In this document: piece after piece, positions 12,292 through 37,400 of the stretch
Layout of the letters: each line of letters opens with the position of its first letter
How positions within the stretch are numbered: the first letter of the stretch is position 1
Translations under genes and position numbers: made by a program
Assembly (NCBI GenBank): GCA_977020255.1
Contig: CDROCS010000506.1
Location: 496,001 to 560,000 of the forward strand
DNA from: Obrimoposthia wandeli
Lineage: Eukaryota
Direction of reading: 5' to 3'
DNA length: 64,000 bases
The notes under the pieces: generated by a model
Databases searched by the model: none
The model's input: only the letters and a program-made list of their open reading frames with translations
Told to the model about the DNA's origin: nothing

Positions 12292-12448
12292 GGAGGATAT
12301 TAGAGGGATATTTTAAATACCTCACACTTTGACTTTTATGTTGAAAATATCCGCTACGATAGAAAAATCCCTAACTATGTTTAGTAATGATGATCAAATT
12401 TATATACCACATTGGGTAGACATTATTGAACAAATAGTAGGAGTTCAT

Positions 12449-15400: not shown

Positions 15401-17311
15401 GAAGATGGCAATAACACCATCAATTTAGGTGAAGGCACAAACACATTATACGGTGGTGCTGGTGCAGATACTGTCATCTCAGGCAGTGGTAACGATCAAC
15501 TCTCCGGATCTGGCGGAGACGATAACCTTTCAGGTGGTGCGGGTAGCGATCAACTCGAAGGTGGTGATGGCAGCGATATCTTATCGGGGGATACTGGTGA
15601 GGACACCCTCTTCGGTAATGACGGTAACGATACCTTACTTGGTGGTGATGGCGCAGATAAACTGTTTGCTGGTGCGGGTGATGACCAATTATTTGGTGGT
15701 GCTGGCGCCGATGAATTACATGCTAGCAGTGGTAACAACACCCTATCTGGTGGTGATGACAATGACACCCTTTATGGCGCAGCAGGTAATGACATTCTTA
15801 GAGGTGATGATGGTGATGACCGACTCGAAGGCTTTGACGGTAACGATACGTTAGAAGGCGGTGCTGGCGATGATAGCTTAAACGCTAGCAGTGGTAATAA
15901 CCAACTCGATGGCGGTATCGGTAATGACGAACTTTCGAGTGGCGATGGAGATGATACGCTCCTCGGTGGTGAAGGTAATGATACGCTCGATGCCGGGGCT
16001 GGTCATAACAACATATCTGGTGGTTTAGGTAACGACACTATCACCGCAGGCGCTGGCAATGATGTTATTAGCGGCGACTCGGGGAACGATACGATTAATG
16101 CCGGTGATGGTGATAACCAAGTTACTGGCGGCATAGGCAGTGATGTCATTAACGCGGGAACGGGTAACGATGCCATTAGTGGCGGTGATGACAATGACCA
16201 AATAACAGTGAGCGGTGGTAACAACCAAATCCTGGGTGATGCAGGTGATGATCAAATCAGAACTGGCGCAGGTAGTGACCAACTATTCGGTGGTGAAGGT
16301 GCGGATAAACTTTACGCCGGTAGTGGTGACGATCAGCTTGAAGGTGGTTCTGGTAACGATAGGCTTTATGGCCAAAATGATAATGACCAATTACTCGGTG
16401 GTCTTGGCGATGATTACCTTAGTGGTGGCTCTGGTGATGACTCCCTACTGGGTGGCGAAGGTAATGATTACATTCGCGGTGACAGTGGTAACGACACACT
16501 ATACGGTGGCGTTGGTGATGACACTGTTCGCGGCGGCAATAATGATGATATCGTCTTTGGTGAGTCCGGTAATGATACCTTAACTGGCGACAACGGTAAT
16601 GATCAGCTCTTCGGCGACATTGGCGACGACAGCCTGCAAGGTGGTTCAGGGGAAGATATTTTATCTGGTGGCGCAGACAACGATAACCTAGCTGGCGGTT
16701 CTGGTAATGATAATCTAGATGGCGGCCTAGGTGACGATCAATTAACCGGTGACAGTGGTGATGATATCCTCTTCGGCCAAGCGGGTAATGACACCTTAGA
16801 TGGCGGCACAGGTAGCGATCAATTATTCGCAGGCGCAGGTAATGATACCTTGATCTTTGATATCACTGAAACAACGAATACCGATGGGGCAACCGTACAC
16901 TTTAGTGGTGGTGCTGGCTTTGACGTATTAGCCGTTGGCAGTGATTCAGATAGCCAAATTATTGATATGACACAAACAGCCTTCCAAGAAATTGAAGGGG
17001 TGGTCGTCAATGCGAGCGATGCTCAACTGAAGATCTCTCTTGATAAAGTGCTGCTTAATGACACAGCTGAAGTGAGCAATAGTCAATTTGTTTGTACAGG
17101 CGCTGATAAGCTAGATTTAAACGGTTTCAACTGGGAAGTATCAAGTAATAATGCCACGCTAAATGATGACTTACGCGATGCCTACGAAGCAAGTAACATC
17201 AATACTGACTCACTATTTGGTTACACTTTTGCCAATGATGAAGGTAAAGAAGTGACAATCTGGAGTGACAGTGAGCAAGAGAATATTAGCTTTAACGGTG
17301 CAGATGTTTAG
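12449..17311 (+). CDS. Giant RTX (GGxGxD nonapeptide) calcium-binding protein, T1SS substrate
   Basis: AGGAG RBS before MQGTNSDD (12449); GGxGxDxLx repeats almost continuous from about 13040 to 16860; acidic C-terminal secretion region; no Sec signal. Confidence 0.9.
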
Positions 17312-17361
17312 CCACTAATAAGCAAATAACGTGAAGTCATAAACCAATAACTGAAGCAGTA

Positions 17362-17396
17362 AAAAAAGGCGGTGATATTTAATCACCGCCTTTTTT
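17362..17396. terminator. Bidirectional intrinsic terminator
   Basis: AAAAAAGGCGGTGAT-ATTTA-ATCACCGCCTTTTTT between convergent genes. Confidence 0.9.
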
Positions 17397-17558
17397 ATCT
17401 CTAAAATATAAACCACAGCTGCGAGAATAAACTCGGCAGGTATAAAAACGACAGACATAAAAAAACACACAGTACAGCTTTAGTTAAAAGCAATACTATG
17501 TGTTTCAAGCAGTTTAAGTAGACTTAACTATCTAGTTTCATCATAAGTTAAACCTAAG

Positions 17559-18395
17559 TTAACTATTCAGACATAGCTTTCTATTCTTAGCAGTAATCAA
17601 ACTATCATTGGAAATAACATAAAAGAAGTAATCATCATCCATTTCATTAGTCTGAATATAAGTACGGATATGATTTAGAATACTTTTAGCCTCGTTGTAA
17701 CTATACAAGTAGCCCTTATCACACTCATTCACCACGTCTAAATCGACCTGTAAGCGATCAAATTGACTCATTAGATCATCTACCCGAGTCACATGTGCTG
17801 CTTGCTGAGCTTCACTGGCATAGCGTACTTCGAACTCAGCCTTCTGTTTTTCCCACGCAGCTACATCACCCACTTTCGCCAATACCTGTGCCTCTTGCTG
17901 CTGTAAGCGCGCAGATTCTAAGTTCAGTTGGTTACGGATAATCGCCAAACCAGCTTGCTCTGCGATCAAGATTTGTTGCTGTTCGGCAATACTCGATGCT
18001 AATTCTTTCTGAAAAGAGCGGCGTAAATCTTTTATATTTTGATCTTTACGTTTCAGCTGTTTACTTTGATACTCTGATTTTAACTGTAATTCATCAATCA
18101 CTTTTTGCTGCGTAGCAAGTTCCTGCTTTTGTATTAACAGCATTTTTTCCAACGTAACATATTCCGTTGACATTATTTGTGCATCGCCTTGTTGATTAGC
18201 TTTCAATGAATCAATCGACACTTGCTGCTCGGTAATAATATTGTTTTTAGTGGCGAGTAAAGCCACATCATTATGACGCTCTGTATACTGCCACGCTGTC
18301 GTGCCAACTAACCCCAACAATATGACCATCACGGTACCAGCGAAAACCAATGCTTGGTTCATTGGCATTGATAAACGATTCTGCTTTTGTTTCAT
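17559..18395 (-). CDS. Hypothetical single-pass membrane coiled-coil protein
   Basis: One N-terminal TM helix, long Q/K/E/L heptad region, short C-terminal domain with 2 Cys; GGGGAG RBS. Confidence 0.75.
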   Translation of the reverse strand: MKQKQNRLSMPMNQALVFAGTVMVILLGLVGTTAWQYTERHNDVALLATKNNIITEQQVSIDSLKANQQGDAQIMSTEYVTLEKMLLIQKQELATQQKVIDELQLKSEYQSKQLKRKDQNIKDLRRSFQKELASSIAEQQQILIAEQAGLAIIRNQLNLESARLQQQEAQVLAKVGDVAAWEKQKAEFEVRYASEAQQAAHVTRVDDLMSQFDRLQVDLDVVNECDKGYLYSYNEAKSILNHIRTYIQTNEMDDDYFFYVISNDSLITAKNRKLCLNS

Positions 18396-18424
18396 CTCAA
18401 CTCCCCCCATTAAGCTACCCTCTA

Positions 18425-18664
18425 CTAAGCGATATATAGTTGTTTCGTTTTACACTGCGGACAAAAATATGACTTAATGTGAATGCTAGATTGGCAATTT
18501 TGACAGATCATATGTTTACGATCTTTGCTTAAATACATACAAATAACACCCACTGGCCCCAGCACATAACCGAGTAAAATACCGGCCACTAAATTACCTT
18601 TTTGATAGCCCATATAAGTCGACAACAAGAAGAAAAATAAATAAAACCCTAACCAAAATAACAT
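18425..18664 (-). CDS. Small membrane protein with C-terminal zinc ribbon
   Basis: Two hydrophobic segments then CQNC...CPQC. Confidence 0.75.
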   Translation of the reverse strand: MLFWLGFYLFFFLLSTYMGYQKGNLVAGILLGYVLGPVGVICMYLSKDRKHMICQNCQSSIHIKSYFCPQCKTKQLYIA

Positions 18665-18679
18665 GCTACATCCTTATAA

Positions 18680-19975
18680 TTATGTTTCTCTAAACGCACG
18701 GTTATACGACGTAAATAAAGGCGCGGTGAAATAATCCCACAACGTACGATCTTCTAATAAAATGAGTACTTCTGTGGGCATACCCGGGTACAAATTAATG
18801 TGAGTAAGCGCCTTTAATTCCGCGCTATTTAATTTTACTTTGATCCGGTAGCCTGCTTTGCCGTCATTGTTTTGTGGGATCCGGTCCGCCGCAACATACA
18901 CGACCTCCCCTGTCACCGGGGCTGTATTACGAATACTGTAAGCAGAAAGCCTGACTTTAGCTTTAAGACCCTGCCTAACCATATCAATATCTTCTGACTT
19001 AACGATAGCATCGACAATTAATTCATCGCCTTCAGGTACAATTTCCATCAGCACTGCTCCAGCGTTAACAACACCACCAACACTATGCACATTCAAACCA
19101 ACCACAGTACCTGCATGCTCACTGCGAATTGTCACCTTGGAACGCGCATCTCGCGCTACATTTAATGCTTGCAACACATCCCGAAGTTCCTTGGATAAGC
19201 TGTCCATTTTCATTGTATATTGCTGCTTTAGCTCTACGTTTTCAGTTTTAAAATCTTGTTCTAATGACGCTGCTTGACGGTTTAATACTCTGCTCTCTGA
19301 ATCAAGCCCTGCTCTTTTAGCTAGCACTTCGGCCTTATTACGTTGCAGCGCCATCACCCGTGTTTTGGATACATAACCTTTATCTAATAACCCTGATAAC
19401 ATCTCTAATTCTTGATCAATTAATACCAACTGGTTATCAACGGCAATAATTTGATATTGAGCGCCTCTAGACTTCTCTTCCAACAAGGTTTTTCGTTGTG
19501 AAAATTGCTCAATACGCAATTCATTATGTAGCACCTCTTGCTGATATTGTAATTGTTGACTGGCAATGATATTACTGTATTCAATACTTTCGACATCTTG
19601 AATAGTAGCGTCGCTCCACACCACGTTATCGTGCCCATTCAATGCAGCAGATAAACGATCATGCTGCGCTTGCAGAAATGTTGCACGCTGTTGTAATCGA
19701 CGAAAATCAGCATCCACTTGGCCACTTGCAAGCTCTAGTAACATATCACCAGCCTGTACTTTTTGCCCCTCAACAACATGTATCGCCTTCACCCAACCAC
19801 CGTCTAAGTGCTGGATTTTTTTACGCTGAGACTCGACAATAATCGTTCCAGGGGCAATAGCGGCAGAGCTTAAATGCATCGAGGTCGACCAAGCAATAAA
19901 ACCACCGATCGTAATAACAATACTAAGGCAACCCGCAATGATAAGCCCACGTGTATCAAATAGCTGTTTATCCAT
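18680..19975 (-). CDS. Type I secretion membrane fusion protein (HlyD/PrtE family)
   Basis: TM anchor, IQHLDGGWVKAIHVVEGQKV, IRSEHAGTV, LYPGMPTEV. Confidence 0.93.
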   Translation of the reverse strand: MDKQLFDTRGLIIAGCLSIVITIGGFIAWSTSMHLSSAAIAPGTIIVESQRKKIQHLDGGWVKAIHVVEGQKVQAGDMLLELASGQVDADFRRLQQRATFLQAQHDRLSAALNGHDNVVWSDATIQDVESIEYSNIIASQQLQYQQEVLHNELRIEQFSQRKTLLEEKSRGAQYQIIAVDNQLVLIDQELEMLSGLLDKGYVSKTRVMALQRNKAEVLAKRAGLDSESRVLNRQAASLEQDFKTENVELKQQYTMKMDSLSKELRDVLQALNVARDARSKVTIRSEHAGTVVGLNVHSVGGVVNAGAVLMEIVPEGDELIVDAIVKSEDIDMVRQGLKAKVRLSAYSIRNTAPVTGEVVYVAADRIPQNNDGKAGYRIKVKLNSAELKALTHINLYPGMPTEVLILLEDRTLWDYFTAPLFTSYNRAFRET

Positions 19976-21704
19976 GCTGTTTCACCTTCTTAACTTCACT
20001 ATCAACGGTAGACACACCATTCATTGCACCAAGGAATTGCTCACATGTCCCCGCTTTTTCAACCTTACCGTCTTTAAGCACCACGACCCAGTCCATCTGC
20101 CTTAAAAACCCAGGTCGGTGGCTAATCATCACTACTGTTATGCTATTTTCTTTACAGTATTGCAGTACAATTGACAGGGCGACTTCACCTTCAGGATCTA
20201 AATTAGAGTTGGGTTCATCAAGGACGAGTAATCTAGGATTAGAAAAAATAGCTCTAGCCAAGCCAATACGTTGTTTTTGACCGCCAGACAGCTGCAAACC
20301 GCCTTCACCAAGGTAAGTATCATAGCCTTTGGGTAATGAAATAATCAGTTCATGAATACAGGCAAGTTGCGCGGCATGAATTATTTTTTCAGCTGGTGCA
20401 TTCGAGTAACGGCAAATATTTTCAGCCACAGTGCCCGCGAGTAAACCCACTTCTTGTGGTAGAAAACCTATGTGTTCACCAATTTCATTTTCGGGCCATA
20501 ATTCCATCGCAGCGCCGTCAATTTTAACCGCCCCTACCGATGGTTTGTGGATCCCCATGATTAAAGCAGCAAGCGTTGATTTACCTGAACCAGTATTACC
20601 CATGATTGCGAGTGCTTGCCCTGCTCCGAGTTTAAAATTAATGTTTTGTAATACTGCGCGCTGTTGATTAGGAAACTTTAACCCCACATTTTCTAACTTC
20701 AATTCGCCTTTTGGTACTGGCAAGCTCGTTTTAAACTCGTCATCCAGCGCACCTTCATTTAATAATTGTAAACGTTTGAATGCATTCCAAGCGCTGTACC
20801 AGCCTTTCCATCCGGCAACCGCTTGTTCAAAAGGAGATAATAAACGCCCCATAATAATCGAACTGGCAATAATAGACCCAGCACCCAGCTGTTGCTGTAA
20901 TACCAGCATGACACCGACAGTCAAGATAGCCACTTGTAACAATGTTCTAAAGTAACGACTAACAGCTAATAGCTGCCCTGTTCTTGCGTTTACTTGCCAT
21001 TGCAGTGCTAACACTTGCTGGTTTTTATCGTGCCACACCTTGCCTATATTATCGGCCATGCCCATCGCGCGTAACATCGGCGCATTTCTTAAAAAGTCAT
21101 TAAGTTCCATACTGGTTTTCATGGCTAATTCTTGCGACTCGCCGCTCGGCTTACGTGCTGCATACATCATCAGCAATGCCAATACTACAAACACTGCACT
21201 ACCAATAAGGGCGACGATACCAAGATAGGGGTGCAGCATGAATAGAATAACCAGAAATACGGCAATCCAAGGAATATCAAAAATGGCAGATGTTGAAGGG
21301 CTAACTAAAAAATTCCTTAGTTCGGTTAAATCTTGTAAACCTTGTTTGTGAATGCAGTTATGCTTAGATGACTGACGAATACTGTCGGCAAGTAATAATG
21401 GACTGAGCGTCAGATCCAGGTTCAACCCCGTTTTTTGTAACAGTAGTGTACGAATATGTTCGATGACAGCTTGGGCTGTTAATAATATAACCGCGATGGC
21501 TAATAAGGCGTATAGCGTATCTAAACTGGCGCTACTCAATACCCGATCAAACAACTGCAAGCTATATAAAGGTAAGGTTAATACCAAAAAATTAATAGCA
21601 AGGCTAAATATAACCACGTAAACAAGATTTTTCTTGCACACACTAAACGCGCTTTGTAGCTCATTTTTCAACAAGGTAGATATCCTTAAAAGCGTAAGTC
21701 CCAA
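19968..21704 (-). CDS. Type I secretion ABC transporter (PrtD/AprD family), canonical ATPase
   Basis: GNTGSGKST, FLPQE, LSGGQKQR, LVLDEP, ISHR all intact; exact start uncertain (TTG). Confidence 0.93.
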   Translation of the reverse strand: MGLTLLRISTLLKNELQSAFSVCKKNLVYVVIFSLAINFLVLTLPLYSLQLFDRVLSSASLDTLYALLAIAVILLTAQAVIEHIRTLLLQKTGLNLDLTLSPLLLADSIRQSSKHNCIHKQGLQDLTELRNFLVSPSTSAIFDIPWIAVFLVILFMLHPYLGIVALIGSAVFVVLALLMMYAARKPSGESQELAMKTSMELNDFLRNAPMLRAMGMADNIGKVWHDKNQQVLALQWQVNARTGQLLAVSRYFRTLLQVAILTVGVMLVLQQQLGAGSIIASSIIMGRLLSPFEQAVAGWKGWYSAWNAFKRLQLLNEGALDDEFKTSLPVPKGELKLENVGLKFPNQQRAVLQNINFKLGAGQALAIMGNTGSGKSTLAALIMGIHKPSVGAVKIDGAAMELWPENEIGEHIGFLPQEVGLLAGTVAENICRYSNAPAEKIIHAAQLACIHELIISLPKGYDTYLGEGGLQLSGGQKQRIGLARAIFSNPRLLVLDEPNSNLDPEGEVALSIVLQYCKENSITVVMISHRPGFLRQMDWVVVLKDGKVEKAGTCEQFLGAMNGVSTVDSEVKKVKQHG

Positions 21705-24434: not shown

Positions 24435-25292
24435 CTACAAGGTGATTTTACTAAAAACGAGTTGCTTGAGCATAAGCAGAAAGCCAATTGGTAGTAAGAT
24501 CGTTTTAAGTAAAAATAATGCCATTAATTCCATAAAGCTAATAATGGAATCTTCAATACTTTGTTGCATGTAAGCAACTTTGTCAGTTTCTGCTTTTAGT
24601 TTGTTTGTGGCATTTTCCCAACTGGCTTTCATTGCATCAACAAAGCCCTGCTCTGCTTTAATGTCTAATTCCGCGCCACCATCTTGAGCTCCTTTAACTA
24701 ATGCCGTTACACCTTCAATTTGGCTGGATTGGAGTTGGATTTGTTCATCAATAAACAGCTTATCCACCATAATATTAAGTCCAAGCGATAGGACGACGGC
24801 AAAGCGTATTAATACGATGACTTTAAATACTGACAGCGCTATTTTTCTATATTGCTTAGCACCTCGGACCCACATTGTTATGAGCAACGCAAAAGACGCG
24901 AGCATTAACAAGATATTAGCTAATTTAGACGCCATCATCATTAACAGGATTTTTTGTAACGCTAATGAACCGACAGCTAATGTCATAACCCAAGTAAATT
25001 TGTTAATCAAGTCGCTCACCGGGTTGAGCATTTCACCTACATCAATCGATGCGACCCCAACTGATAACTCAGTACTTTTAACAACCGATATAACGGCATC
25101 AAGCGTACGTGCGACAGCGAAACTAGCACCTGCAGCAACAATTGACTCATCTACCATGGTATGCGCTTTCTCATCTGCGACACGAACAAGGCCTAAAACA
25201 GTGATAGCAATAATTAAAACTGTCATCAGCCATTTAATAGACAGGTTAGGTTTCGATTCAAGGGTTGTTGTCACTACATCTAAATTATTCAT
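24435..25292 (-). CDS. Hypothetical multi-pass membrane protein
   Basis: Long ORF with about 5 hydrophobic helices and a helical soluble segment; AGGA RBS. Confidence 0.7.
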   Translation of the reverse strand: MNNLDVVTTTLESKPNLSIKWLMTVLIIAITVLGLVRVADEKAHTMVDESIVAAGASFAVARTLDAVISVVKSTELSVGVASIDVGEMLNPVSDLINKFTWVMTLAVGSLALQKILLMMMASKLANILLMLASFALLITMWVRGAKQYRKIALSVFKVIVLIRFAVVLSLGLNIMVDKLFIDEQIQLQSSQIEGVTALVKGAQDGGAELDIKAEQGFVDAMKASWENATNKLKAETDKVAYMQQSIEDSIISFMELMALFLLKTILLPIGFLLMLKQLVFSKITL

Positions 25293-25398: not shown

Positions 25399-27585
25399 TT
25401 AATCCACCATCGCAGCAACAGCATTCACGTTATGATGCAAAATACTCGACTTAGCCTGTAGCACTTTATCTGGCGCGCCAAAGAACTTCTGCCCGCCGTC
25501 ATCATCCAATAACAAACATAAATCAGACGCAGCGACCATGGTCTTGTCCGTTGTCGTAAAGATCACCGATGCTTGCGATAAGTGCTGGGCAAATAATGCG
25601 GTGAGATATTTACTGCTTTCTTGCTCGGAACCGACAAAAGGTTCATCAATCAATACGACTTTTTTACGACAATGACCCAAACCAATCGCTAAGGTCAGTT
25701 TACGAATAACACCATCGGGTAAAGAGGCAACAAACTCATTACTCAGGTACGTGTCCTTTCCATCAGGTAAAAACTTATCAAGGTGAAAAAAGGTCAGCAT
25801 GCTAGTTATAAACGATGCCGGTACGAAACCATTATAAATGATGTAATTTGATTCAACGGTCCCTTGATAAAAGTGCATATCAAACGGGATATAACAAATG
25901 CTATTACGAAAGCGAAAGTTATTAAATTGGTTAATATTGTAACCATCTAACGACACCTTGCCTTGAAATCTAGCTTCAACGCCACCGAGTATATTAAGCA
26001 AGGTAGTTTTACCTATACCGGAAGGCGTACACACAGACAGTTTTTGCCCAGGCGATAGCTTGAACGAGAGATTGGTTAACCCCTTTGTCGCATTGGGGTG
26101 TCGATGCGATAAACCAGCCACTGACACAGTTCCTTGAAACTGGTTAATGGGTGGGCTTTTCTCCATTTTGCTTTTATCATCATCCAACGACATCAGCGCA
26201 TTAATCTGAGCTGATGAGGCTTTGATACTGTCTAAACGAGTTAACGAATTATAAATGCCCATAATCGGCGTTAACGCTTTCCACACCAAAATGATAATCG
26301 CTAACATAGCGCCCGCATTAGTCGTGCCATCCATCACAGATGCCACCGCGACGACAATACTGGTCGTCCCGATGATTTGGATAAAGCTACTGCCGAGCTG
26401 CTGCACTTTAGTACTGGTAACCGCAACTAGGTGTGAATCTTGTAATCGTTGACCAAGTGCAGATGTGAAGCGCGATTTGATAACCGACACTAATGGTAGC
26501 CCCTGAATAGAGGCAACATTTTCGAGTACTTCATTCCACTGATTGGCGACAATAGCATTCGCTCGCGAACTCTTTGAGGTCACTTGACTAAATCGGTAGC
26601 GTGAATAAATACAAAACAACATCATAAACAATATACCGATGATAACCGTAACCGCAGCCGTTCCAGACATAATCAAAATAGCGACAATAAACACCAGAAT
26701 AAACGGTAAATCAAAATAGCTTAAACTCGATTCTGCAGTCACTAAGCGCCTAAATTGGTCAATATCCTTCAACCTAGCCAACTGAGATGATTTACCAGCA
26801 CCAGATGTTAGCGCATAAGGCAGCCAGAGGAGCTTGGAGATCACATGGTAGGAGATGTATTCGGCGAGCTCTTGCCCTGAGCTGTTAAGCACTGCCATAC
26901 GCTGGTGCTTACAAATATACTCAATAACAGCAACCATAACAGCACCTAACGCTAACCACAGTAAGGTTGACTGTGAATCAGCTGTTAGCGCAAAATTGTA
27001 TACGCTCATAATAAAAAACGGCTGTATTGCACCTAATAAGCTGATAATAAAACTGAGTAATGCCAGATTTTTTAACTCGCTAGAATAGTGATAAAAAGCG
27101 TGCTTTATCCAATTGCGTTTATCTTGTGACTCTGGTGGCGGCTCTCGAAATAACCGTGAATAGCGGGAAATACTGCATACTTCGGCCTCAAACGTGCCGG
27201 TATGTTGATGTTCAACCAACACATCATTTTCGTAATCATACAGATAGAGAACACCATCTCGATAATCAAGTAAGATATAAGACTGCGCCTGTAAGCGAAT
27301 AAAACTCGGACAATCGATATCGAGAAGTTGTTCAACGTCCTTAACTACATGATGCTCACACTGATAACCTAAACGCGTTAACGTTTTATCAAAGCTAAGG
27401 TGATGGTCTGCTTGGTAGATGAATGTATCGGATAAAATATCAGGCGTACCCTCCCACTCTAATGCGACGAGTGTATAAGCAAGACCTAATAATAAAGGGT
27501 TCTTAGCATATCGTTCCGATAACGAACCATGCTTGAATTGATCTAACCGTTGTTGGATCTCATCAAAAGCAATTAACGTATCCAT
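25399..27585 (-). CDS. T1SS-type ABC transporter with N-terminal C39-like domain; degenerate NBD
   Basis: ABC TMD; TPSGIGKT Walker A, LPDGV signature, VLIDEP Walker B. Confidence 0.8.
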   Translation of the reverse strand: MDTLIAFDEIQQRLDQFKHGSLSERYAKNPLLLGLAYTLVALEWEGTPDILSDTFIYQADHHLSFDKTLTRLGYQCEHHVVKDVEQLLDIDCPSFIRLQAQSYILLDYRDGVLYLYDYENDVLVEHQHTGTFEAEVCSISRYSRLFREPPPESQDKRNWIKHAFYHYSSELKNLALLSFIISLLGAIQPFFIMSVYNFALTADSQSTLLWLALGAVMVAVIEYICKHQRMAVLNSSGQELAEYISYHVISKLLWLPYALTSGAGKSSQLARLKDIDQFRRLVTAESSLSYFDLPFILVFIVAILIMSGTAAVTVIIGILFMMLFCIYSRYRFSQVTSKSSRANAIVANQWNEVLENVASIQGLPLVSVIKSRFTSALGQRLQDSHLVAVTSTKVQQLGSSFIQIIGTTSIVVAVASVMDGTTNAGAMLAIIILVWKALTPIMGIYNSLTRLDSIKASSAQINALMSLDDDKSKMEKSPPINQFQGTVSVAGLSHRHPNATKGLTNLSFKLSPGQKLSVCTPSGIGKTTLLNILGGVEARFQGKVSLDGYNINQFNNFRFRNSICYIPFDMHFYQGTVESNYIIYNGFVPASFITSMLTFFHLDKFLPDGKDTYLSNEFVASLPDGVIRKLTLAIGLGHCRKKVVLIDEPFVGSEQESSKYLTALFAQHLSQASVIFTTTDKTMVAASDLCLLLDDDGGQKFFGAPDKVLQAKSSILHHNVNAVAAMVD

Positions 27586-27586
27586 G

Positions 27587-29197
27587 TTAGTTCACCTCAT
27601 TTATTTTTAATCTATTAATCATCATATCAACTTGGCTGATTTTATTACTGGCAATGATAAACGTGTACGCTTGAGTGCGTGGTCGTAAACAAGCTAATAA
27701 ATTAACACTGAAGACTTCGTCATAAACAAGATCAATATCGTCGATCAAGATAATGTGTTTATTACTCAATAATGCTCTCACGATAAGCAAGGCAAAGTGA
27801 ACTTGGCGAGAAAATGGCTGAGCGTTGACACTATTAATATCGGTAAAGAAGCCTTGTTTTAACTCATCAATTTGTCCCTTTACAGCAAGCGCTTCACACA
27901 AGGAATACGCCGCTTTGTGGTATTGCGGGCGGAAACAAGTGATATTATCGATGATAGAACCTTCTATAAAATGACTATTTTTATCTATTTTAACAATGTC
28001 GTCCATATACTCAGAAACATAATAATGCGGGATAACACCACCATTAACTGCAACTTGATAACCTTCTATTTCTTGTTCGTACACAAGTGCATTTAACACA
28101 CTGCTTTTGCCACAACCTGATGGTCCAGTAATGATATTTATTTTTCTAGCATCAAACTGATAATCTTTATGGTGGTGATAACTGATTGAATCTATATTCG
28201 TTACACTATTCGCCGCTGCCCTGCCTTTAATTAGCACGCTTTTTTTCTCTGGATCTACTTCTTCTAAATCCAACATCTCATTGAGTCTATGAATATAGCT
28301 TTTATTAACCTGCCACTGACTTAATGTCCGCATCGCTTGTTGGTAAGGGGCGAAATAACGGTTCGTCAACAAAATAATCGCAGCCATCACACCTTGACTC
28401 ATGCCTAAGCTAATTACCGCAGTCGCACAGCTAATCACAACTAATATAATCGTGATTTGTTGGATAAAATTGAGCAATAAATTGTAACGAGATTCTTGCT
28501 GTTCAAATTCAGTATTATGTTGTTCCCTTTGTTTGATCATCGTATCCATCAAGTTTTCAACTCGATATTCCATCGCTCGACTTTTTATATCCATTGGATA
28601 AGACACGATTTCAATCACTTTCGAATTCGTCAGTCCTTCGATGTCAGATTTAGCTTCCAGTAACTGTACTTTTTTAGTCGCTAAATACCGCGCGACCACG
28701 AACAAAAATAAAGACGCGGCAAGTAACGTTAATCCTGCACCGAGATCTATAATTGCTATCACTAACAAAGTAATGCCGCAGGTAGCAATATTAATCGCGG
28801 CAGTGATCAAGTCACCGCTAAAGAACGATTTTAAATTTGGGATCGTACGTAATCGCTCTAAATATTCGCCCGTTTGCAAGCGACTTAAGTGGCTTAAATT
28901 GGCATGACAAATAGCATTAAAAAGTTGATTCGTGATATTTTTTTCAAATCGATTGGCGATCTTTGACACAATTTTTTCTTCGATGCCTTTGACTTTGTAA
29001 TCTAAAAAAATAGCCGTCAAAACAATAGCAAAGATGAAATACAATGAAGACGTTGAATTATTCGGTAAAATACGGTCAAAAATAATCAAGATAGAAAAAG
29101 GCAGCACAAAACCTAATAAGGTGGTGACAAGGCTGGAGATAAACAAAAAACACGAATCATAAACACTGAGTTTAGGTATATAGTTTAACTTCTTCAT
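27587..29197 (-). CDS. Second T1SS-type ABC transporter subunit; degenerate NBD
   Basis: HlyB-like TMD (LPFSILIIFDRIL), GPSGCGKS, FSRQV signature, IILIDD Walker B. Confidence 0.78.
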   Translation of the reverse strand: MKKLNYIPKLSVYDSCFLFISSLVTTLLGFVLPFSILIIFDRILPNNSTSSLYFIFAIVLTAIFLDYKVKGIEEKIVSKIANRFEKNITNQLFNAICHANLSHLSRLQTGEYLERLRTIPNLKSFFSGDLITAAINIATCGITLLVIAIIDLGAGLTLLAASLFLFVVARYLATKKVQLLEAKSDIEGLTNSKVIEIVSYPMDIKSRAMEYRVENLMDTMIKQREQHNTEFEQQESRYNLLLNFIQQITIILVVISCATAVISLGMSQGVMAAIILLTNRYFAPYQQAMRTLSQWQVNKSYIHRLNEMLDLEEVDPEKKSVLIKGRAAANSVTNIDSISYHHHKDYQFDARKINIITGPSGCGKSSVLNALVYEQEIEGYQVAVNGGVIPHYYVSEYMDDIVKIDKNSHFIEGSIIDNITCFRPQYHKAAYSLCEALAVKGQIDELKQGFFTDINSVNAQPFSRQVHFALLIVRALLSNKHIILIDDIDLVYDEVFSVNLLACLRPRTQAYTFIIASNKISQVDMMINRLKINEVN

Positions 29198-30591
29198 TGC
29201 CCACCCTCTTCGCTGGTTAATTTATCTAAAAGACTGATATCGAACTCACGCTTAAATGGGATCATGGTATCGGAAACTGCCGCTAACGTAGTTAAATTAA
29301 GAGGACCAAATAAAGCATGCAGCTTAGTGATATTAATAATGTAGTCGTATTGATTAGTATAATAATCGCGAATACTATCAAAAAGATCGGACTCTGCGCT
29401 GAGTAAATCAGTTAACGTCTTAGACCCTATTTTGTAAGCTCTTTGCATACCTTTATAAACAGAGTAATTCGATTTTACGACAGACGTTAATAAACTTAAC
29501 GATTCAACGTTATTGTTAATTTGAAAAACCAGCTCTTCAAAGCTTAGTTGGGAATCATTAATCGATTGTTCATAACGCGATGACAGCTGCGCTAGCTCAT
29601 TTTTACTTTTTTGATAATTAAAATAATTCGCCCCGCCATTAGTTATCGGGATACTGAGGTTGAGGCTGTAAATCATTTCATCGGTATCACTGCCCCCACT
29701 TAAATTACTATCAGTAAACTCGTAGTTAGCAGATGCTGACAAGGTTGGGTAAAAATCTGCGCGTGATTGTTTCAATGAATCTTCGCTGCGAGCAAGGTTA
29801 TTCTTCGCGATCACAATGTCATAATTACGCTCAAATAAACGCGTTTGTAACGCTGCTTTTTCGGTATCATCAATACCGACGTATTTATAAGACAACTCTA
29901 GATCATAAGCAGGTAAGACACTGCTTTGAGATACGGACCTTAGTTTAATCAAGCCAATATTAATATTACGCTGAATATTGGCTAGTTGGCGTCCATTTGA
30001 ATCTTGCTGTGCTTTCGCTTCATAGACATCGGTTTTCGGTAGATTACCTAATTCATGATTACGCTTGATTTGCTTTAATCGCGCTTGAGAAGAAGTGAGT
30101 TCTGCTTTTGTGGCTTTTAGTTGTGCTTGAAACTTAAGAAATGAAAAGTAATTATCGACAACGCCCACGATAGTATCGTTAACAATCTTGTGATGACGTA
30201 ACGCCTCAATTTGATAATCAGTATCACTGATATTATACGCGTAGATATCTGCAAAATTAAAAATGGTCTGGTTAACGGATACGTTATAGCCATTACTGTT
30301 ATAGCTATCAGCACTCGCTATACCTGAACGTGGTTTAACCTCCTTGTCATTCCAGCGCGTATTGACACCAGCTTCTATACTTGGGAAAAAAGCAGACATA
30401 CTTGTTTTTCGATCCCAGCCTGATGACTGCAATTCAAATTCTGCATTTTTGATATTATAGTTATTCGCAATGGTGTGCTCTATCAACGTTGAGAGTTCAC
30501 TGTTTACCGTTTGATTTACATTCGCCGCGGTCGCTTTAGTGGCAGTCCCTGCCACTGCAAATACCGAAATAAATAAATAAGCTGCTTTCAT
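29194..30591 (-). CDS. TolC-family outer-membrane efflux protein
   Basis: Signal peptide; duplicated TolC pattern (SAFFPSIEAG / ADFYPTLSAS), DLLSAE. Confidence 0.88.
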   Translation of the reverse strand: MKAAYLFISVFAVAGTATKATAANVNQTVNSELSTLIEHTIANNYNIKNAEFELQSSGWDRKTSMSAFFPSIEAGVNTRWNDKEVKPRSGIASADSYNSNGYNVSVNQTIFNFADIYAYNISDTDYQIEALRHHKIVNDTIVGVVDNYFSFLKFQAQLKATKAELTSSQARLKQIKRNHELGNLPKTDVYEAKAQQDSNGRQLANIQRNINIGLIKLRSVSQSSVLPAYDLELSYKYVGIDDTEKAALQTRLFERNYDIVIAKNNLARSEDSLKQSRADFYPTLSASANYEFTDSNLSGGSDTDEMIYSLNLSIPITNGGANYFNYQKSKNELAQLSSRYEQSINDSQLSFEELVFQINNNVESLSLLTSVVKSNYSVYKGMQRAYKIGSKTLTDLLSAESDLFDSIRDYYTNQYDYIINITKLHALFGPLNLTTLAAVSDTMIPFKREFDISLLDKLTSEEGGQ

Positions 30592-32813
30592 TAACCGACT
30601 TTCCTTATCGCCGTGTATTTTTTGATCACCGAATAGATTTCATCAGTTTTATAAGGTTTACTGATAACGTAATCCATACCGGCATCAATACACTGTTTAT
30701 GCTCAGCTTTACTGGTTAAACCGGTAGCACCGATAATGGTGCAATTGGCTTGCCTTTGTGTTGATTCATATCTTCGTATTAGTTGCGTAGCCTCCATACC
30801 GCCCATCCCCGGCATAATACAATCCATGAAAATCATGTCATATTGATGCACGGCAACGTTATCAAGGGCTTTTTTACCATCATCAACCGTCTCACATTCA
30901 AAGCCCAGATTATTTAAAATCTTCTTCAAGATAAATTGTTGGATCTTGTCATCTTCAACAATTAAGAATTTACTACTTTGTTCGGTGTTAACTTCGTTAT
31001 CTTGATTAAACGTGTCAACAATATTGCTGATAAATTCAGTCGGGATAAAGGGCTGATAAAATACGCGATCAACGTGGTTATAAATACCATCGAGTACGGC
31101 ACTTCCCGTCATTGAAATGAAGAGTTTAATACGTTTTTTGGCTAACCTAGACCGTAAGGTTTTACAGAATGAATTAAGGTTAACACCGGAAATTGAGTCT
31201 GTTAAAAACACCGCATCATTCTCATTCAGAAGGTGCATTGCTTTCAATATACTGGATGCTGTTGGCGCAATAATAATGTCAGCACCTTGTGCTTCAAGCG
31301 TCTTAGCAATAACGTCTATCTGCATTGCAGATTCACCACATACAATAATCTTTTTAGTCGCTAACAAATCATTATGTTTTTGGTATTCAGCTGCATTGAT
31401 GTCAAAGGAAACAGTCAATCTATTCACATTTTCAAGGCTGGATTGATTTGCTTGATAATCACCGACACCACTGAATAAGTTCTGAGATAACTCTTGATGG
31501 GCGATATCGTTACGCTTATTACCTTGCCAATCTAAAGCTTGCAGTGATTGCATTGAATCAAAGCTATCGTCATATTGATAAAGTTCAAAATCTACCCGTA
31601 ATTTATCCACGCGTTTAGCACTACTGCAGTTAACCATTAACACATTTTTGGTATATTTTGAACTCGAGAGAGTGTTAGAAAACTGCATCAATAACAACCA
31701 GAATAGACGTGACTGATTCCCATGAAACTTAGTCGGCAGTGTATTTTCTACATAACATTCTATCGATTGTGATGACTGCTTAGACTTACTATCAATTAAT
31801 ACAAACAGCTCGCTGAGCAACCCATATGAATCAATCAAGGTTTCATTATTGTCTGCTTCAATTGCCGATAAACTATTAAAATTATCCGCTAAATTTTCCA
31901 GTGTATTCGTTGCAGTGATCACCTCTTTCGCCAGTAATGCACCATCTTCGTCACTGTCTTTAACAAGTAACTTAACGCAGCCTTGAATGGTATTCGTGAT
32001 CCCCCTGACTTCATAACCTAATAAATTATATAAACGCTGGAGTAAATCTGTTTTTGATTTTTGTATTTCCAATTCTTCAAAATTAAACAACAATTTCGCA
32101 TAAATATTCTTTTCTATTTGGCTGGTATTGATGTTGCGAATACGCTGTTCTATTTCACTATAATCAATGTTCTTAATATCATTAGAAATACTCTTAAACG
32201 TGCTTTCAGTTTCCAACTTCGCGTTAACCGCAGCCGCTAAACTACGGCGACTATTATAGTGGTAATAACTAAACAACATTAATAAACCCAAGCTAAATAA
32301 TCCCCCTAGATAGAGCTGCGAGCTAGAGTCTGCAGTATTTTTTTGCTGGTAGTTTGAAATAATATTGTTCAATTCAACAGAACTGCTGAGTAATACAGTA
32401 TCCAATTGTCTATTTAACTCACCAATATCCTGTATTTCATTATATTTATTTATATATAATTCAATTAAGTCAAAATCTAATATACCGGTAGACATAACTA
32501 GTTGCTTTTCTTTCGAGACCTCAGCATGAAATCCATCAATAGCTTGAACCAGTTTGCCAGTGAATAAACTTAGCTGAGCCGTATTGCAACTAAACTCGCC
32601 ACCATTACACATACTTAACGCTGTCGTGAGTTGCGAGATTTGGTCGATCACTACTTGTGATTTAGTCACTAATAATGCCTGACTATCTTGTTCTTTATTA
32701 CGGTCTGAAATAAGATTTTCACCGTAAATATAAACAAACTGGAAGACCAAGGCCAAAACAGTGACGATAAAAATCACACGTAAGCGCGTGGCTGAGAAGT
32801 GAGTATTGGTCAT
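30591..32813 (-). CDS. Hybrid sensor-kinase-like protein with degenerate HisKA/HATPase and C-terminal receiver
   Basis: Two TM helices, GYEVRGIT at the H-box, pseudo-receiver, C-terminal VEDD...FMDCIMP...SKP. Confidence 0.75.
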   Translation of the reverse strand: MTNTHFSATRLRVIFIVTVLALVFQFVYIYGENLISDRNKEQDSQALLVTKSQVVIDQISQLTTALSMCNGGEFSCNTAQLSLFTGKLVQAIDGFHAEVSKEKQLVMSTGILDFDLIELYINKYNEIQDIGELNRQLDTVLLSSSVELNNIISNYQQKNTADSSSQLYLGGLFSLGLLMLFSYYHYNSRRSLAAAVNAKLETESTFKSISNDIKNIDYSEIEQRIRNINTSQIEKNIYAKLLFNFEELEIQKSKTDLLQRLYNLLGYEVRGITNTIQGCVKLLVKDSDEDGALLAKEVITATNTLENLADNFNSLSAIEADNNETLIDSYGLLSELFVLIDSKSKQSSQSIECYVENTLPTKFHGNQSRLFWLLLMQFSNTLSSSKYTKNVLMVNCSSAKRVDKLRVDFELYQYDDSFDSMQSLQALDWQGNKRNDIAHQELSQNLFSGVGDYQANQSSLENVNRLTVSFDINAAEYQKHNDLLATKKIIVCGESAMQIDVIAKTLEAQGADIIIAPTASSILKAMHLLNENDAVFLTDSISGVNLNSFCKTLRSRLAKKRIKLFISMTGSAVLDGIYNHVDRVFYQPFIPTEFISNIVDTFNQDNEVNTEQSSKFLIVEDDKIQQFILKKILNNLGFECETVDDGKKALDNVAVHQYDMIFMDCIMPGMGGMEATQLIRRYESTQRQANCTIIGATGLTSKAEHKQCIDAGMDYVISKPYKTDEIYSVIKKYTAIRKVG

Positions 32814-32814
32814 G

Positions 32815-34143
32815 TTATCTCTCATCAAAAGACTCATCGAGTGCAGTTATAACGGGTTTAAGTGCGTAATCAATTACTTTGCGAGTGCCCGTTTTAATAT
32901 CCGCGGTAAATTCCATATAAGGCGTGAGATAATATTTACTGCCCGCTTTATCAAGGTAGTGGCTATCCATGACTATTTTCGCAATATAATATTCAGCGTC
33001 ATCATCTTTGTAAGAACTACGTGATATTGACGATATAACACCATTTACAACACCGTATTTAGAAAAGCTATATGAATCAAATTTCAATTTAACAGCCTGC
33101 CCTTTTTCAACAAAACCAACGTCTTTACGTGGGATTTTGATTTCGCCGTGCAGGGTATTATTTAACGGGGTGATATCAGCGATACTGTCACCAGGGGCAA
33201 TGACGGCTGAGATATAGTTGTAGTGCACTTTATCAACGGTGCCATCAACTGGTGAGAACACTAATAAGCGCTCAACCTTGTCACGGATGGTCGGTAACTG
33301 AGTTTGCTTTACACCTAAGATTTTATTGGTATCGGTGATTTGACTTTGATATTCGCTATTTCTAGATTGGCGACTATCTATTAATGCCTTTTCCAATCGA
33401 ATAAGTGCATAACGTTCATTCAATGTCGCTTCTTCTAGATTCTCAATTTCCCTGACCATGTTCATACGCTGCACTTTCATATTTAGTACATCGACATAAG
33501 ACAGCATTTCTTCTTTATATAATTGAGTTTTAATCGACAATTGTTCAGAGATTAAAGCCAGCTGATTATTTGAAGACTTAATGCGCTTAGCCATCGATAC
33601 TATCAAGCCACTTTTGTGGTTAATATCATGTTCAACAAGCTGATCGTTCGACAGGTTTTTTTGCGATTCTTCTAACCATGATCGTCGATATTGTTGAACA
33701 AGAGCTGGATAACCAGAAAAACCTAAAAACGATGGTTCAAGCTGATTTATTAATGCTTTGTTCTTAATCAGGCTTAATTGTAAGTCCGCAATTTCAAGTT
33801 GGGTTTTATTTAATTCACTGGTTCTGTCTTGCGATGTTAGCGCTGCTATTTTCTGACCTTTGTAAACAAGATCACCTGGTGATATATAAATTTCATCTAA
33901 AATACCCCCCTCTAAATGCTGGACCTTTTCAACATCGGTATCTAACAATACTTCCCCGCGAGTAGACACAGTTATATCAAGTTGTGCAATTGAAGCCCAA
34001 ATAATAGCTATCAAAGCAAATACAGACATAAGTAGAAATACTTTATGTTTCGTCACTTTTTGTACTGCCATACTATTAGTGTGTTCACCACTGGTATGGC
34101 AATGATTAATCGAGCTTTCTATAATTTTATCCAAATTAGACAT
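32815..34143 (-). CDS. Type I secretion membrane fusion protein (HlyD family)
   Basis: VQHLEGGILDEI, SPVDGTV, VKLKFDSYSFSKYG, LTPYMEFTADIKTG. Confidence 0.92.
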   Translation of the reverse strand: MSNLDKIIESSINHCHTSGEHTNSMAVQKVTKHKVFLLMSVFALIAIIWASIAQLDITVSTRGEVLLDTDVEKVQHLEGGILDEIYISPGDLVYKGQKIAALTSQDRTSELNKTQLEIADLQLSLIKNKALINQLEPSFLGFSGYPALVQQYRRSWLEESQKNLSNDQLVEHDINHKSGLIVSMAKRIKSSNNQLALISEQLSIKTQLYKEEMLSYVDVLNMKVQRMNMVREIENLEEATLNERYALIRLEKALIDSRQSRNSEYQSQITDTNKILGVKQTQLPTIRDKVERLLVFSPVDGTVDKVHYNYISAVIAPGDSIADITPLNNTLHGEIKIPRKDVGFVEKGQAVKLKFDSYSFSKYGVVNGVISSISRSSYKDDDAEYYIAKIVMDSHYLDKAGSKYYLTPYMEFTADIKTGTRKVIDYALKPVITALDESFDER

Positions 34144-34445: not shown

Positions 34446-37400
34446 ATGTCTACAGAGAACAATGGCAATATTCTAAACGATGCAGTTGAGCAAGTTAATA
34501 CTGATGAAACCTCGATAAGACCGTCGGAAGGAACTGCTAACCAAAACAACCAACAGTCAACAACTGCAAATACTGTTGCCACTGGCGCAGATCTTCAGGC
34601 CCCGCAAGTTTCTGCCGATAGTCAGCCCGCAGAAAGTAGTTCTGAAGATAATCAAGGACGAGACGAGAACTCAAACTCTCAAGGCCAGCAAAATCAATCA
34701 CCAAATACAGCAAACGAGCAGTCAAACTCAGCGCAATCATCACCGGTTGGTAATGGCGAAAATCAAGAAGAGACTAATAAACCGAACAGCTCACAAAATA
34801 ATGACGTACAAGATGTGGGTGGAGCAGAACCGTCACAACAAGGCCTAGATAATGGTCGACAATCCAACCAACAAAATGAACCACAAAATCAAGAGTCAGA
34901 AAATGCGCCCTCTGCCAATGGCAGGGAACAAAATAACAGTGATGAAATTACTGATAATCACTCGTTTGACGTTAACGTCGCAGGTCCAACAAGATCTGAT
35001 GAACTAGAGAATAGCGACTCAATTGAAGATGAATTTAGCTTTGATGTCGACATAACTGCCGTCAATGACGCTGTCGTCATCGATACAAACAGTATTCCCG
35101 CATTTAATACCGATGAAGACAACCTGATCCACATTACTGAAGCCGCGCTATTAGCCAATGCAAGTGATGTTGATGGCGATGATTTAACGGTTACGAATCT
35201 CAGTATCGATAACGCCACGTTCACCACTGTGATTGACCCAGAAACAGGCGACCGCACATTTATCGTCACACCTGATGAAAATGTAAATGGCGATCTAGCG
35301 ATCAACTTTAATGTCACCGACTCACAAGGTAGCACTGTCGTTTCCGGAGCTGAGTTAGTTGTTGAAGCTGTTAACGATGCCCCGGTATTAGCTGAAACAA
35401 TCTTCACCATTAACGAAGACAATAGCATTATCATCACACCAGCGGATCTGCTCCCAAACATCAGTGATGTTGATGGCGATACTGTGACCGTCACTGATAT
35501 CAACGCAAATGACCACGGTAGTGTGACTCAAAATACAGATGGTAATTGGGTATTCACCCCTGATGAAAACTATGCCGGTGACGCAACACTAACGATTTCA
35601 CTATCTGATGGAACAGCTACTACCGAACACAACGCAACGGTTTCAATCACGCCCGATGCCGATGCGCCATCACTCACAGTGTCACCTGCAGAAACGGTAT
35701 TAATTGACTCTGAATCAGCCCCATCAATAACGACAGGCTGGCTCACTGACAATGCTAATGGTTACATTGAAACCCACCCAGACCACGTTTACACTGGTAT
35801 CAATGAAGGCCGTGGTAACGTCATTGAACTTGAAGCAAACCGTGGCGATGAGTCAAATATCTATCAAGACTTGAATGTCTCTGCTGGCGACACAGTTACG
35901 TTAAGCTTCGATCTTTCTGCCCGTAAAAACTACGAAGGCGAAGACTCTCAGGTTAATGTCTATTTCGACGGTGAGTTAGTGGATGTCATTATTCCTGAAC
36001 AAGTTGGCTGGAATACTTTCACCTACCAACTAACAGCGACAACTGATAACCCACGTCTTGAGTTTAATGCTCCTGGCGATAATAGCCTCGGCGCAGTACT
36101 GGATCAGATCAACGTTGTTGAAACCGAAATATTTGCCGAAGATACCGCTGTGAGTCTAGATATCAATGCGGCGCTAACAGATACCGACGGCAGTGAAGAG
36201 ATTGATTCAATTGTCCTTGATGCTGTCATGGTCGGCGCGACAATAACCGATGGCACCAACGAGTTTGTTGCTAGCGAAGGTAATGACAGTGTTGATGTGA
36301 AAGACTGGGATCTAAGCACCCTCACCTTCCAAGGTCCACAAGATTTTGTCGGCGATGTGTCATTAGATGTCACCGTCACAGCAGTTGAAACAGCCAATGG
36401 TGACAGTGCACAAACAACTGAAACCATCGAATTCAATGTATTCAACGTCAATGACCCTGTCGTCATTGATGAAAACAGTACCCCTGCATTTAATACCGAC
36501 GAAGATAGCGTGATCCACATTACCGAGGCGGCGCTATTAGCCAATGCAAGTGATGTTGATGGCGATGATTTAACGGTAACGAATCTCAGTATCGATAACG
36601 CCACGTTCACAACTGTGATTGACCCAGAAACAGGCGACCGCACGTTTATTGTGACTCCTGATGAAAATGTAAATGGCGATCTAGCGATCAACTTTAATGT
36701 CACCGACTCACAAGGTAGCACTGTCGTTTCCGGAGCTGAGTTAGTTGTTGAAGCTGTTAACGATGCCCCGGTATTAGCTGAAACAATCTTCACCATTAAC
36801 GAAGACAATAGCATTATCATCACACCAGCGGATCTGCTCCCAAACATCAGTGATGTTGATGGCGATACTGTGACCGTCACTGATATCAACGCAAATGACC
36901 ACGGTAGTGTGACTCAAAATACAGATGGTAATTGGGTATTCACCCCTGATGAAAACTATGCCGGTGACGCAACACTAACGATTTCACTATCTGATGGAAC
37001 AGCTACTACCGAACACAACGCAACGGTTTCAATCACGCCCGATGCCGATGTACCATCACTCACAGTGTCACCTGCAGAAACAGTATTAATTGACTCTGAA
37101 TCAGCCCCATCAATAACGACAGGCTGGCTCACTGACAATGCTAATGGTTACATTGAAACCCACCCAGACCACGTTTACACTGGTATCAATGAAGGCCGTG
37201 GTAACGTCATTGAACTTGAAGCAAACCGTGGCGATGAGTCAAATATCTATCAAGACTTGAATATCTCTGCTGGCGACACAGTTACGTTAAGCTTCGATCT
37301 TTCTGCCCGTAAAAACTACGAAGGCGAAGACTCTCAGGTTAATGTCTATTTCGACGGTGAGTTAGTGGATGTCATTATTCCTGAACAAGTTGGCTGGAAT

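Follow-up and report, generated by a model that had tools for sequence, protein, structure and literature searches.

We analyzed a window of 64,000 nucleotides, meaning the whole stretch of DNA at positions 496,001 to 560,000 (forward strand) of contig CDROCS010000506.1, from the Obrimoposthia wandeli assembly GCA_977020255.1. Here, we describe positions 25399-29197 of this window, where two adjacent genes encode different ATP-binding cassette (ABC) subunits, A and B, of a type I secretion system (T1SS). They are the last two of five closely packed genes on the minus strand (25399-34143), in the order hlyD, receiver protein, tolC, A, and B, and an adhesin gene lies divergent to this operon. 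The features are as follows.

32815-34143, minus strand: HlyD-family T1SS periplasmic adaptor (NCBIfam TIGR01843, 286.5 bits, cutoff 208.65)
30591-32837, minus strand: kinase-like receiver membrane protein, 748 residues (Pfam Response_reg at residues 625-738)
29194-30591, minus strand: TolC-family outer-membrane channel (Pfam OEP, 178.6 bits)
27587-29197, minus strand: ABC subunit A, 536 residues (Pfam ABC_membrane and ABC_tran)
25399-27585, minus strand: ABC subunit B, 728 residues (Pfam ABC domains; NCBIfam LssB-type model, below cutoff)
34446-42413, plus strand: cadherin-repeat adhesin, 2655 residues, the probable substrate (Pfam repeats, composition, and adjacency)

The junctions within the operon are either overlaps or a single nucleotide. 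The hlyD and receiver genes overlap by 23 nt, the receiver gene and tolC by 1 nt, and tolC and A in an ATGA at the start of A. Between the TAA stop of A and the ATG start of B there is 1 nt, with GAGG-type ribosome sites upstream, and the open reading frames of both subunits are intact and translationally coupled. An earlier interpretation drawn from the letters of this DNA (hereafter the sequence-only reading) had already described a T1SS with two ABC subunits whose reading frames are intact and tightly coupled. The TAA-N-ATG spacing confirms the coupling, and the operon content supports the T1SS assignment, with an HlyD-family adaptor and a TolC-family channel in the same operon and synteny kept. 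The channel scores 165.9 bits with the NCBIfam model type_I_sec_TolC, under the cutoff of 225, and is syntenic in related loci. Promoter and terminator scans gave matches at chance level only.

Word-based homology searches retrieved hundreds of relatives in Vibrio, Aliivibrio, Photobacterium, Shewanella, Colwellia, Psychromonas, and other genera. Among named relatives, those closest to A and B are from Aliivibrio (~70% identity). Alignments were built from 77 sequences of A, with 43-86% identity to the window, and 81 of B, with 34-90%; the counts given below are of phylogenetically non-independent sequences. The correspondence of motifs between A, B, and PrtD, a T1SS ABC protein encoded in the same window, was set by a three-way alignment of their nucleotide-binding domains (NBDs). 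The motifs found by translation are listed with their counts among orthologues, for subunit A and then for subunit B.

A, 28103-28126, minus strand: Walker A, GPSGCGKS (G358 77/77, G363 77/77, K364 76/77)
A, 27977-27985, minus strand: Q-loop position, DKN, without Gln (position 405 Asp 58/77 or Asn 19/77, followed mostly by Lys or Arg; no Gln)
A, 27800-27814, minus strand: signature FSRQV, replacing LSGGQ (S463 71/77, R464 76/77, Q465 70/77)
A, 27737-27754, minus strand: Walker B, IILIDD, with Asp at the catalytic Glu position (D486 77/77, D487 75/77); D-loop D489 77/77
A, 27641-27649, minus strand: H-loop, SNK, with Asn (N518 76/77)
B, 26005-26028, minus strand: Walker A, TPSGIGKT (K526 80/81)
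B, 25882-25890, minus strand: Q-loop, IPF, replacing Gln (P567 79/81; position 568 Phe 60/81, Tyr 9/81)
B, 25708-25722, minus strand: signature LPDGV, replacing LSGGQ; family form LPxG[VI] (P623 73/81, fourth-position Gly 65/81)
B, 25642-25659, minus strand: Walker B, VVLIDE, catalytic Glu kept (D647 80/81, E648 80/81)
B, 25549-25557, minus strand: H-loop, TTT (position 679 Asn 55/81, Thr 9/81, Ser 8/81, also Val and Met; His 0/81)

The sequence-only reading had listed the same motifs, namely a kept Walker A, FSRQV, IDD, no Q-loop Gln, and an H-loop Asn in A, and TPSGIGKT, IPF, LPDGV, IDE, and TTT in B, and translation reproduced every one. Two residues of B are not typical of the family. The Thr at the first position of Walker A is a local variant, as 60 of the 81 orthologues have Gly, and the Thr at the H-loop position is a clade variant, with Asn in most orthologues. 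PrtD (19968-21704) served as an internal control. It carries GNTGSGKS, LPQE, LSGGQ, LVLDEP, and ISHR and scores 608 bits against its NCBIfam cutoff of 510, so its earlier description as fully canonical stands.

Both subunits fall below the curated NCBIfam cutoffs for T1SS permease/ATPases. A matches T1SS or peptidase-ABC models best, none of them above cutoff, with 153 bits against 693.1 for LssB and 108.7 against 510 for PrtD. The top model of B is LssB, at 252.7 bits against 693.1, and PrtD follows at 194.1 against 510. Neither subunit has the consensus NBD motif set; the Walker A Lys and Walker B Asp are all that they share of it, and only B has the catalytic Glu. The system resembles a T1SS in its working but lies outside both the curated T1SS ABC cutoffs and the motif consensus. 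Whichever way A and B pair, as heterodimers or as homodimers, this system has no consensus ATP site.

A and B both contain PF00664 and PF00005, and both have the type IV exporter fold. A is a short half-transporter, with a six-helix transmembrane domain (TMD) and a shortened NBD that is truncated at both ends in the three-way alignment. B, the long half-transporter, consists of an N-terminal C39-like domain (approximately residues 1-150), a six-helix TMD, and an NBD. The two are only ~20% identical. The AlphaFold2 model of A (mean predicted local distance difference test score, pLDDT, 80.6) matches the exporter cores of TM287/288, HlyB, PCAT1, and PrtD in Foldseek. The model of B (mean pLDDT 81.0, ~80-88 in the N-terminal domain) has HlyB (8dck_A) as its top full-length match by TM-score, at 0.76/0.80 over 701 columns including the N-terminal domain, and also fits the T1SS/exporter folds of HlyB, PrtD, and PCAT1. 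Residues 1-150 of B contain no Cys or His that is invariant among the orthologues, and the domain has no Pfam C39 match. Therefore, it is C39-like rather than a peptidase, and B falls into group 2 of the C39-like-domain (CLD) proteins, those with a C39 fold and no catalytic Cys/His.

The deviant residues of A and B are near-invariant, beyond what chance would give. We calculated the ratio of non-synonymous to synonymous substitution (dN/dS) by the Nei-Gojobori method from codon alignments of fetched genomes, using pairs 80-97% identical in B. Median dN/dS was 0.019 for the A NBD, 0.022 for the B NBD, 0.014-0.022 for the TMDs of A and B, and 0.015 for HlyD; dS is near saturation (1.4-1.7), which makes these ratios rough, though dN is still far under dS. 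The NBDs of both subunits are under purifying selection. We also compared domain identities between the window and three Aliivibrio genomes. PrtD follows the usual order for ABC proteins, with its NBD (73-74%) more conserved than its TMD (63%), whereas this order is reversed in A (NBD 56-58%, TMD 69-70%) and in B (NBD 65-66%, TMD 76-77%). The reversal would fit NBDs that have partly lost their catalytic constraint yet are still required. Among metagenomes, marine and food runs contain near-identical copies of 25399-29197 (at least half of the sampled words shared), and estuary, seawater, and aquatic ones contain partial matches.

A simple explanation for such motifs would be that A and B are decaying, strain- or lineage-specific remnants of a once-canonical T1SS ABC protein. 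The NCBIfam T1SS scores, far under their cutoffs, are what decay would give. However, the same motifs recur in the 77 A and 81 B orthologues at 34-90% identity, dN/dS is ~0.02, both reading frames are intact, and synteny is kept across at least 10 genera. Contigs of other strains, from three other DNA-type runs, span most of the stretch and show no indels. The orthologue counts, dN/dS, and lack of indels rule out decay confined to this strain, and decay in any form is hardly credible to us. The sequence-only reading had argued against simple decay and proposed an orthologue motif alignment with dN/dS as the check; once run, this check returned no canonical orthologues and strong purifying selection, and the argument is upheld.

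We scanned synteny with one genome per species, which gave 66 loci with the A/B family from at least 10 genera. The module and the adhesin occur in about 66 species of Vibrio, Aliivibrio, Photobacterium, Shewanella, Psychromonas, Colwellia, and others, and all named hosts belong to marine genera. The order HlyD, receiver protein, TolC, A, B is found in almost all 66 loci; in two distant loci the module genes are present in a rearranged order. A cadherin-type adhesin gene adjoins the module in nearly all loci and is divergent in most, with the same strand used in some Shewanella and the opposite side of the module in one locus. The sequence-only reading had suggested a machine that needs another energizer, but a search of the conserved module turned up no candidate gene for one. 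Downstream of B, at a distance of 106 nt, lies a predicted multi-pass membrane protein of 285 residues (24435-25292, minus strand); neither Pfam nor NCBIfam matches it, tblastn gives no match in the fetched loci of relatives, and it is probably outside the conserved module.

We considered the nearby PrtD/HlyD pair as the true engine of the module and rejected it as a general explanation, since it adjoins B only in the window and in three Aliivibrio loci and not in the other genera. The neighborhood of GH16, DUF3131, PrtD, and HlyD genes beside B is common to the window and three Aliivibrio genomes only. In the window, PrtD belongs to a second T1SS (12329-21704) made up of a 1660-residue RTX protein with 50 nonapeptide-repeat stretches, a 283-residue unknown protein, HlyD, and the canonical PrtD. 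This second system lacks a dedicated gene for an outer-membrane channel.

The adhesin is the probable substrate of the A/B machine, judging by its conserved adjacency and its composition. Pfam identifies 11 Cadherin_5, Big_9, and Cadherin_4 repeats along with DUF642 modules, and these repeat families bind calcium. The protein is strongly acidic (D+E 19.5%, K+R 1.6%), has no N-terminal signal peptide, and ends in an acidic C-terminal tail. Its first ~200 residues (34446-35050, plus strand) are of low complexity, rich in Asn, Gln, Ser, and Glu, and do not form a LapA-type retention module. There are no RTX nonapeptide matches in the protein, and Tandem Repeats Finder detected no tandem repeats in its gene.

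The 748-residue protein has an N-terminal region of transmembrane, periplasmic, and transmembrane segments followed by a degenerate histidine-kinase-like core. Its sole Pfam match is the C-terminal Response_reg domain, which is intact, and no HATPase_c domain is detectable. The H-box position is Tyr instead of His in 53 of 54 orthologues. In the receiver domain, D629, D630, D672, T705, and K727 are conserved, corresponding to the acidic pocket, the phospho-acceptor Asp, the Thr, and the Lys. The protein is present in essentially every related locus, and because this synteny recurs in nearly all of them, we count it as a constant fourth or fifth component of the module. The sequence-only reading had raised the possibility of a machine repurposed for anchoring or sensing. 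A link to signaling is supported by the constant receiver protein; repurposing is not, as the protein fits regulated secretion instead.

In many Vibrio loci, a bona fide hybrid histidine kinase with HisKA, HATPase_c, and two receiver domains is encoded ~0.7 kb downstream of B; it has the same position in Vibrio loci of the Splendidus clade, for example at 12823-16038 (plus strand) of locus L014. It is not beside B in the window. This kinase could be the phosphodonor of the His-less receiver protein.

To judge from their genes and motifs, A and B most probably pair as a heterodimer. Site I would then combine the Walker A and B motifs of A with the LPxG[VI] signature of B; in it, Asp replaces the catalytic Glu, and the Q-loop Gln, H-loop His, and signature Ser are missing. 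Site II would combine the Walker motifs of B with the FSRQV signature of A. Here the Lys/Thr of Walker A and the Asp of Walker B remain, as does the catalytic Glu, but Phe replaces the Q-loop Gln, Asn or Thr the H-loop His, and Arg-Gln the Gly-Gly of the signature. The sequence-only reading had called both sites degenerate and proposed a machine with little or no ATP hydrolysis. Both are indeed non-consensus, but the term goes too far in that both subunits still have the Walker A Lys and Ser/Thr and the Walker B Asp, and B also has the Glu. Because both subunits retain the residues that bind Mg-ATP, ATP binding at both sites is favored. By analogy with the degenerate sites of TM287/288, TmrAB, and TAP, site I should bind ATP without hydrolyzing it. 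Site II is plausibly slow rather than dead because its Walker residues and the Glu of B (80/81) are kept, and we infer that it is the sole hydrolytic site.

Our preferred interpretation, to which we give about even credence, is that A, B, HlyD, TolC, and the receiver protein are a self-contained, conserved T1SS for the divergent adhesin, with slow hydrolysis at site II. In such a machine, ATP binding would close the NBD dimer and hold the conduit open for the long time that an unfolded chain of 2655 residues may need, and slow hydrolysis at site II would then reset it. Calcium-dependent folding of the cadherin-type repeats in seawater may aid translocation, and the proton-motive force possibly does so as well. 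The receiver-domain protein would gate secretion when phosphorylated or dephosphorylated itself. There is precedent for parts of this scheme. An H-loop His changed to Asn or Gln keeps transport in NBS2 of ABCC1 (PMC7756269), and ATP binding alone can drive a translocation stroke in TmrAB (PMC7205462).

Several points weigh against this interpretation. Site II is without its Q-loop Gln and H-loop His and so may be dead too. The H-loop His is reportedly essential in HlyB, in work by Zaitseva and colleagues from 2005. Conversely, the conserved replacements could sustain normal turnover, and A2 and B2 homodimers are a possible arrangement. The near-saturated dS loosens the dN/dS argument, and evidence for transcription is weak, consisting of three small contigs at 98-99% identity from one metatranscriptome library.

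We weighed three other accounts. If neither site hydrolyzes ATP, both would only bind nucleotide, as structural glue or a ligand gate in the manner of the degenerate site of CFTR, and the proton-motive force and calcium-driven folding would pay for export. In its favor, a consensus signature, the Q-loop Gln, and the H-loop His are missing from both sites, conservation of the A-loop aromatic residue of A is poor among the 77 orthologues, and the NBDs are less conserved than the TMDs, opposite to PrtD. The hosts are all of marine genera, where external calcium is ~10 mM, and the substrate is made of calcium-binding repeat families. However, the Walker B Asp and catalytic Glu of B, each present in 80 of 81 orthologues, are hard to explain without chemistry, and an ATP-bound machine still requires some means to reopen. 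We consider a complete loss of hydrolysis unlikely. At the other extreme, the pair may be a normal ATPase that uses a non-canonical set of residues, with the Arg of FSRQV reaching into site II as a trans arginine finger and the H-loop Asn standing in for His. The replacements are near-invariant (R464, N518, and, more loosely, Asn at position 679 of B), which suggests a selected function, and the ABCC1 result is in keeping with the His-to-Asn exchange. Yet we know of no precedent for an arginine finger in the signature motif of an ABC ATPase, although our search was not exhaustive. The NBDs also evolve faster than the TMDs, and position 679 varies among Asn, Thr, Ser, Val, and Met, unlike a catalytic residue. 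Normal turnover of this kind strikes us as distinctly unlikely.

A and B may alternatively form separate A2 and B2 homodimers, possibly mixed in a multi-dimer assembly like that of HlyB/HlyD (whose three-dimer architecture was reportedly described by Zhao and colleagues in 2022) and divided in role, e.g., conduit versus scaffold. Going by the titles of PDB entries 7sgr and 8dck, the HlyB/D complex has three ABC dimers, and the low identity between A and B would sit well with separate assemblies. On the other hand, the two genes are adjacent, translationally coupled, and co-occur in about 66 genomes, and the combination of Asp in one subunit and a deviating signature in the other is typical of heterodimers. 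Homodimers seem improbable to us, and as all sites would be non-consensus anyway, the main conclusion is unaffected by the choice.

We also found signs that the A/B family may belong to a wider class. Next-tier relatives of B (21-26% identity) also have deviant signatures. Three of the contigs of these distant relatives carry a short ABC gene (557-597 residues), then a long one (727-742 residues), then hlyD.

L072:6331-10229, Marinicaulis metagenome-assembled genome (alphaproteobacterial): TolC and a cadherin/RTX adhesin alongside; Glu, Gln, and His in the short subunit only
L073:5319-9184, metagenome: several two-component signaling proteins near; Glu, Gln, and His in the long subunit only
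L074:2463-6472, metagenome: response-regulator genes near; Glu, Gln, and His split between the subunits

Both signatures are non-consensus in all three. These sequences, three in number, suggest that the Vibrionaceae/Shewanella family is one extreme of an unrecognized short-plus-long T1SS subclass. Five further loci (L067-L071) were rejected as relatives, as they are pattern matches to ordinary canonical LssB-type T1SS. A bolder proposal would be that both sites are without canonical catalysis and the machine is an ATP-gated, phosphorelay-controlled conduit, with hydrolysis absent or triggered by the FSRQV Arg, powered mainly by calcium-dependent folding, and maybe representative of a general T1SS subclass. 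We regard this proposal as speculative and unlikely.

Among known systems, MARTX secretion is the closest in kind. It is the only described T1SS we found with two different ABC genes in its secretion operon, and it too occurs in Vibrionaceae. We take RtxB and RtxE to be both long and to carry consensus motifs, whereas A and B are a short and a long protein that both deviate. The MARTX substrate is a toxin with rtxHCA alongside, unlike the cadherin/Big_9/DUF642 adhesin here, and the MARTX operon has no kinase-like receiver protein and leaves tolC to be encoded elsewhere. In that system (RtxB, RtxD, RtxE, TolC), both ABC proteins are needed for secretion (PMC3034196).

Heterodimeric exporters such as TM287/288, TmrAB, BmrCD, TAP1/2, and MsRv1273c/72c share with A/B two adjacent half-transporter genes and the same fold, as well as an Asp for the catalytic Glu in one subunit and a non-consensus signature in its partner. 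Those with one degenerate site keep one consensus site (PMC7756269), in agreement with the background given by the sequence-only reading. In A/B, by contrast, the second site is also without the Q-loop Gln, the H-loop His, and LSGGQ, and unlike A/B those exporters do not couple to an HlyD adaptor and a TolC channel. HlyB and LssB resemble B in their three-domain architecture and their HlyD and TolC partners, with the LssB-type model being the top NCBIfam match of B; however, HlyB is a homodimer with consensus motifs, and B deviates in its Q-loop, signature, and H-loop.

The LapB/LapC/LapE type of system (LapA, FrhA, MpIBP) likewise exports a giant repeat adhesin with calcium-binding Ig- or cadherin-like extenders through a dedicated set of ABC, membrane fusion, and outer-membrane proteins. 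It differs in having a single ABC protein and in its control by LapD/LapG and cyclic di-GMP through an N-terminal retention module; Pfam detected no LapD/LapG-type domains among the genes adjoining the module in the window. The BapP system of Pseudoalteromonas tunicata (PMC12153261) has a locus of superficial similarity but was set aside as a counterpart because it is MacB/LolD-like and of another family. Full-text literature searches, whose coverage is incomplete and gives no proof of absence, returned no description of the A/B family.

In the standing picture, T1SS engines are homodimeric ABC ATPases with two consensus sites, and heterodimeric exporters keep one. The system described here adds a widespread and strongly conserved T1SS with two different ABC subunits and no consensus site at all. 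It is a natural experiment on how far a protein-conducting ABC machine needs ATP hydrolysis, and it bears on what other drivers, such as ATP binding, the proton-motive force, or a calcium ratchet, may contribute to moving chains of several thousand residues. Furthermore, an integral receiver-domain protein within a T1SS points to direct phosphorelay control of adhesin export, in hosts that are abundant marine, symbiotic, and food-spoilage bacteria.

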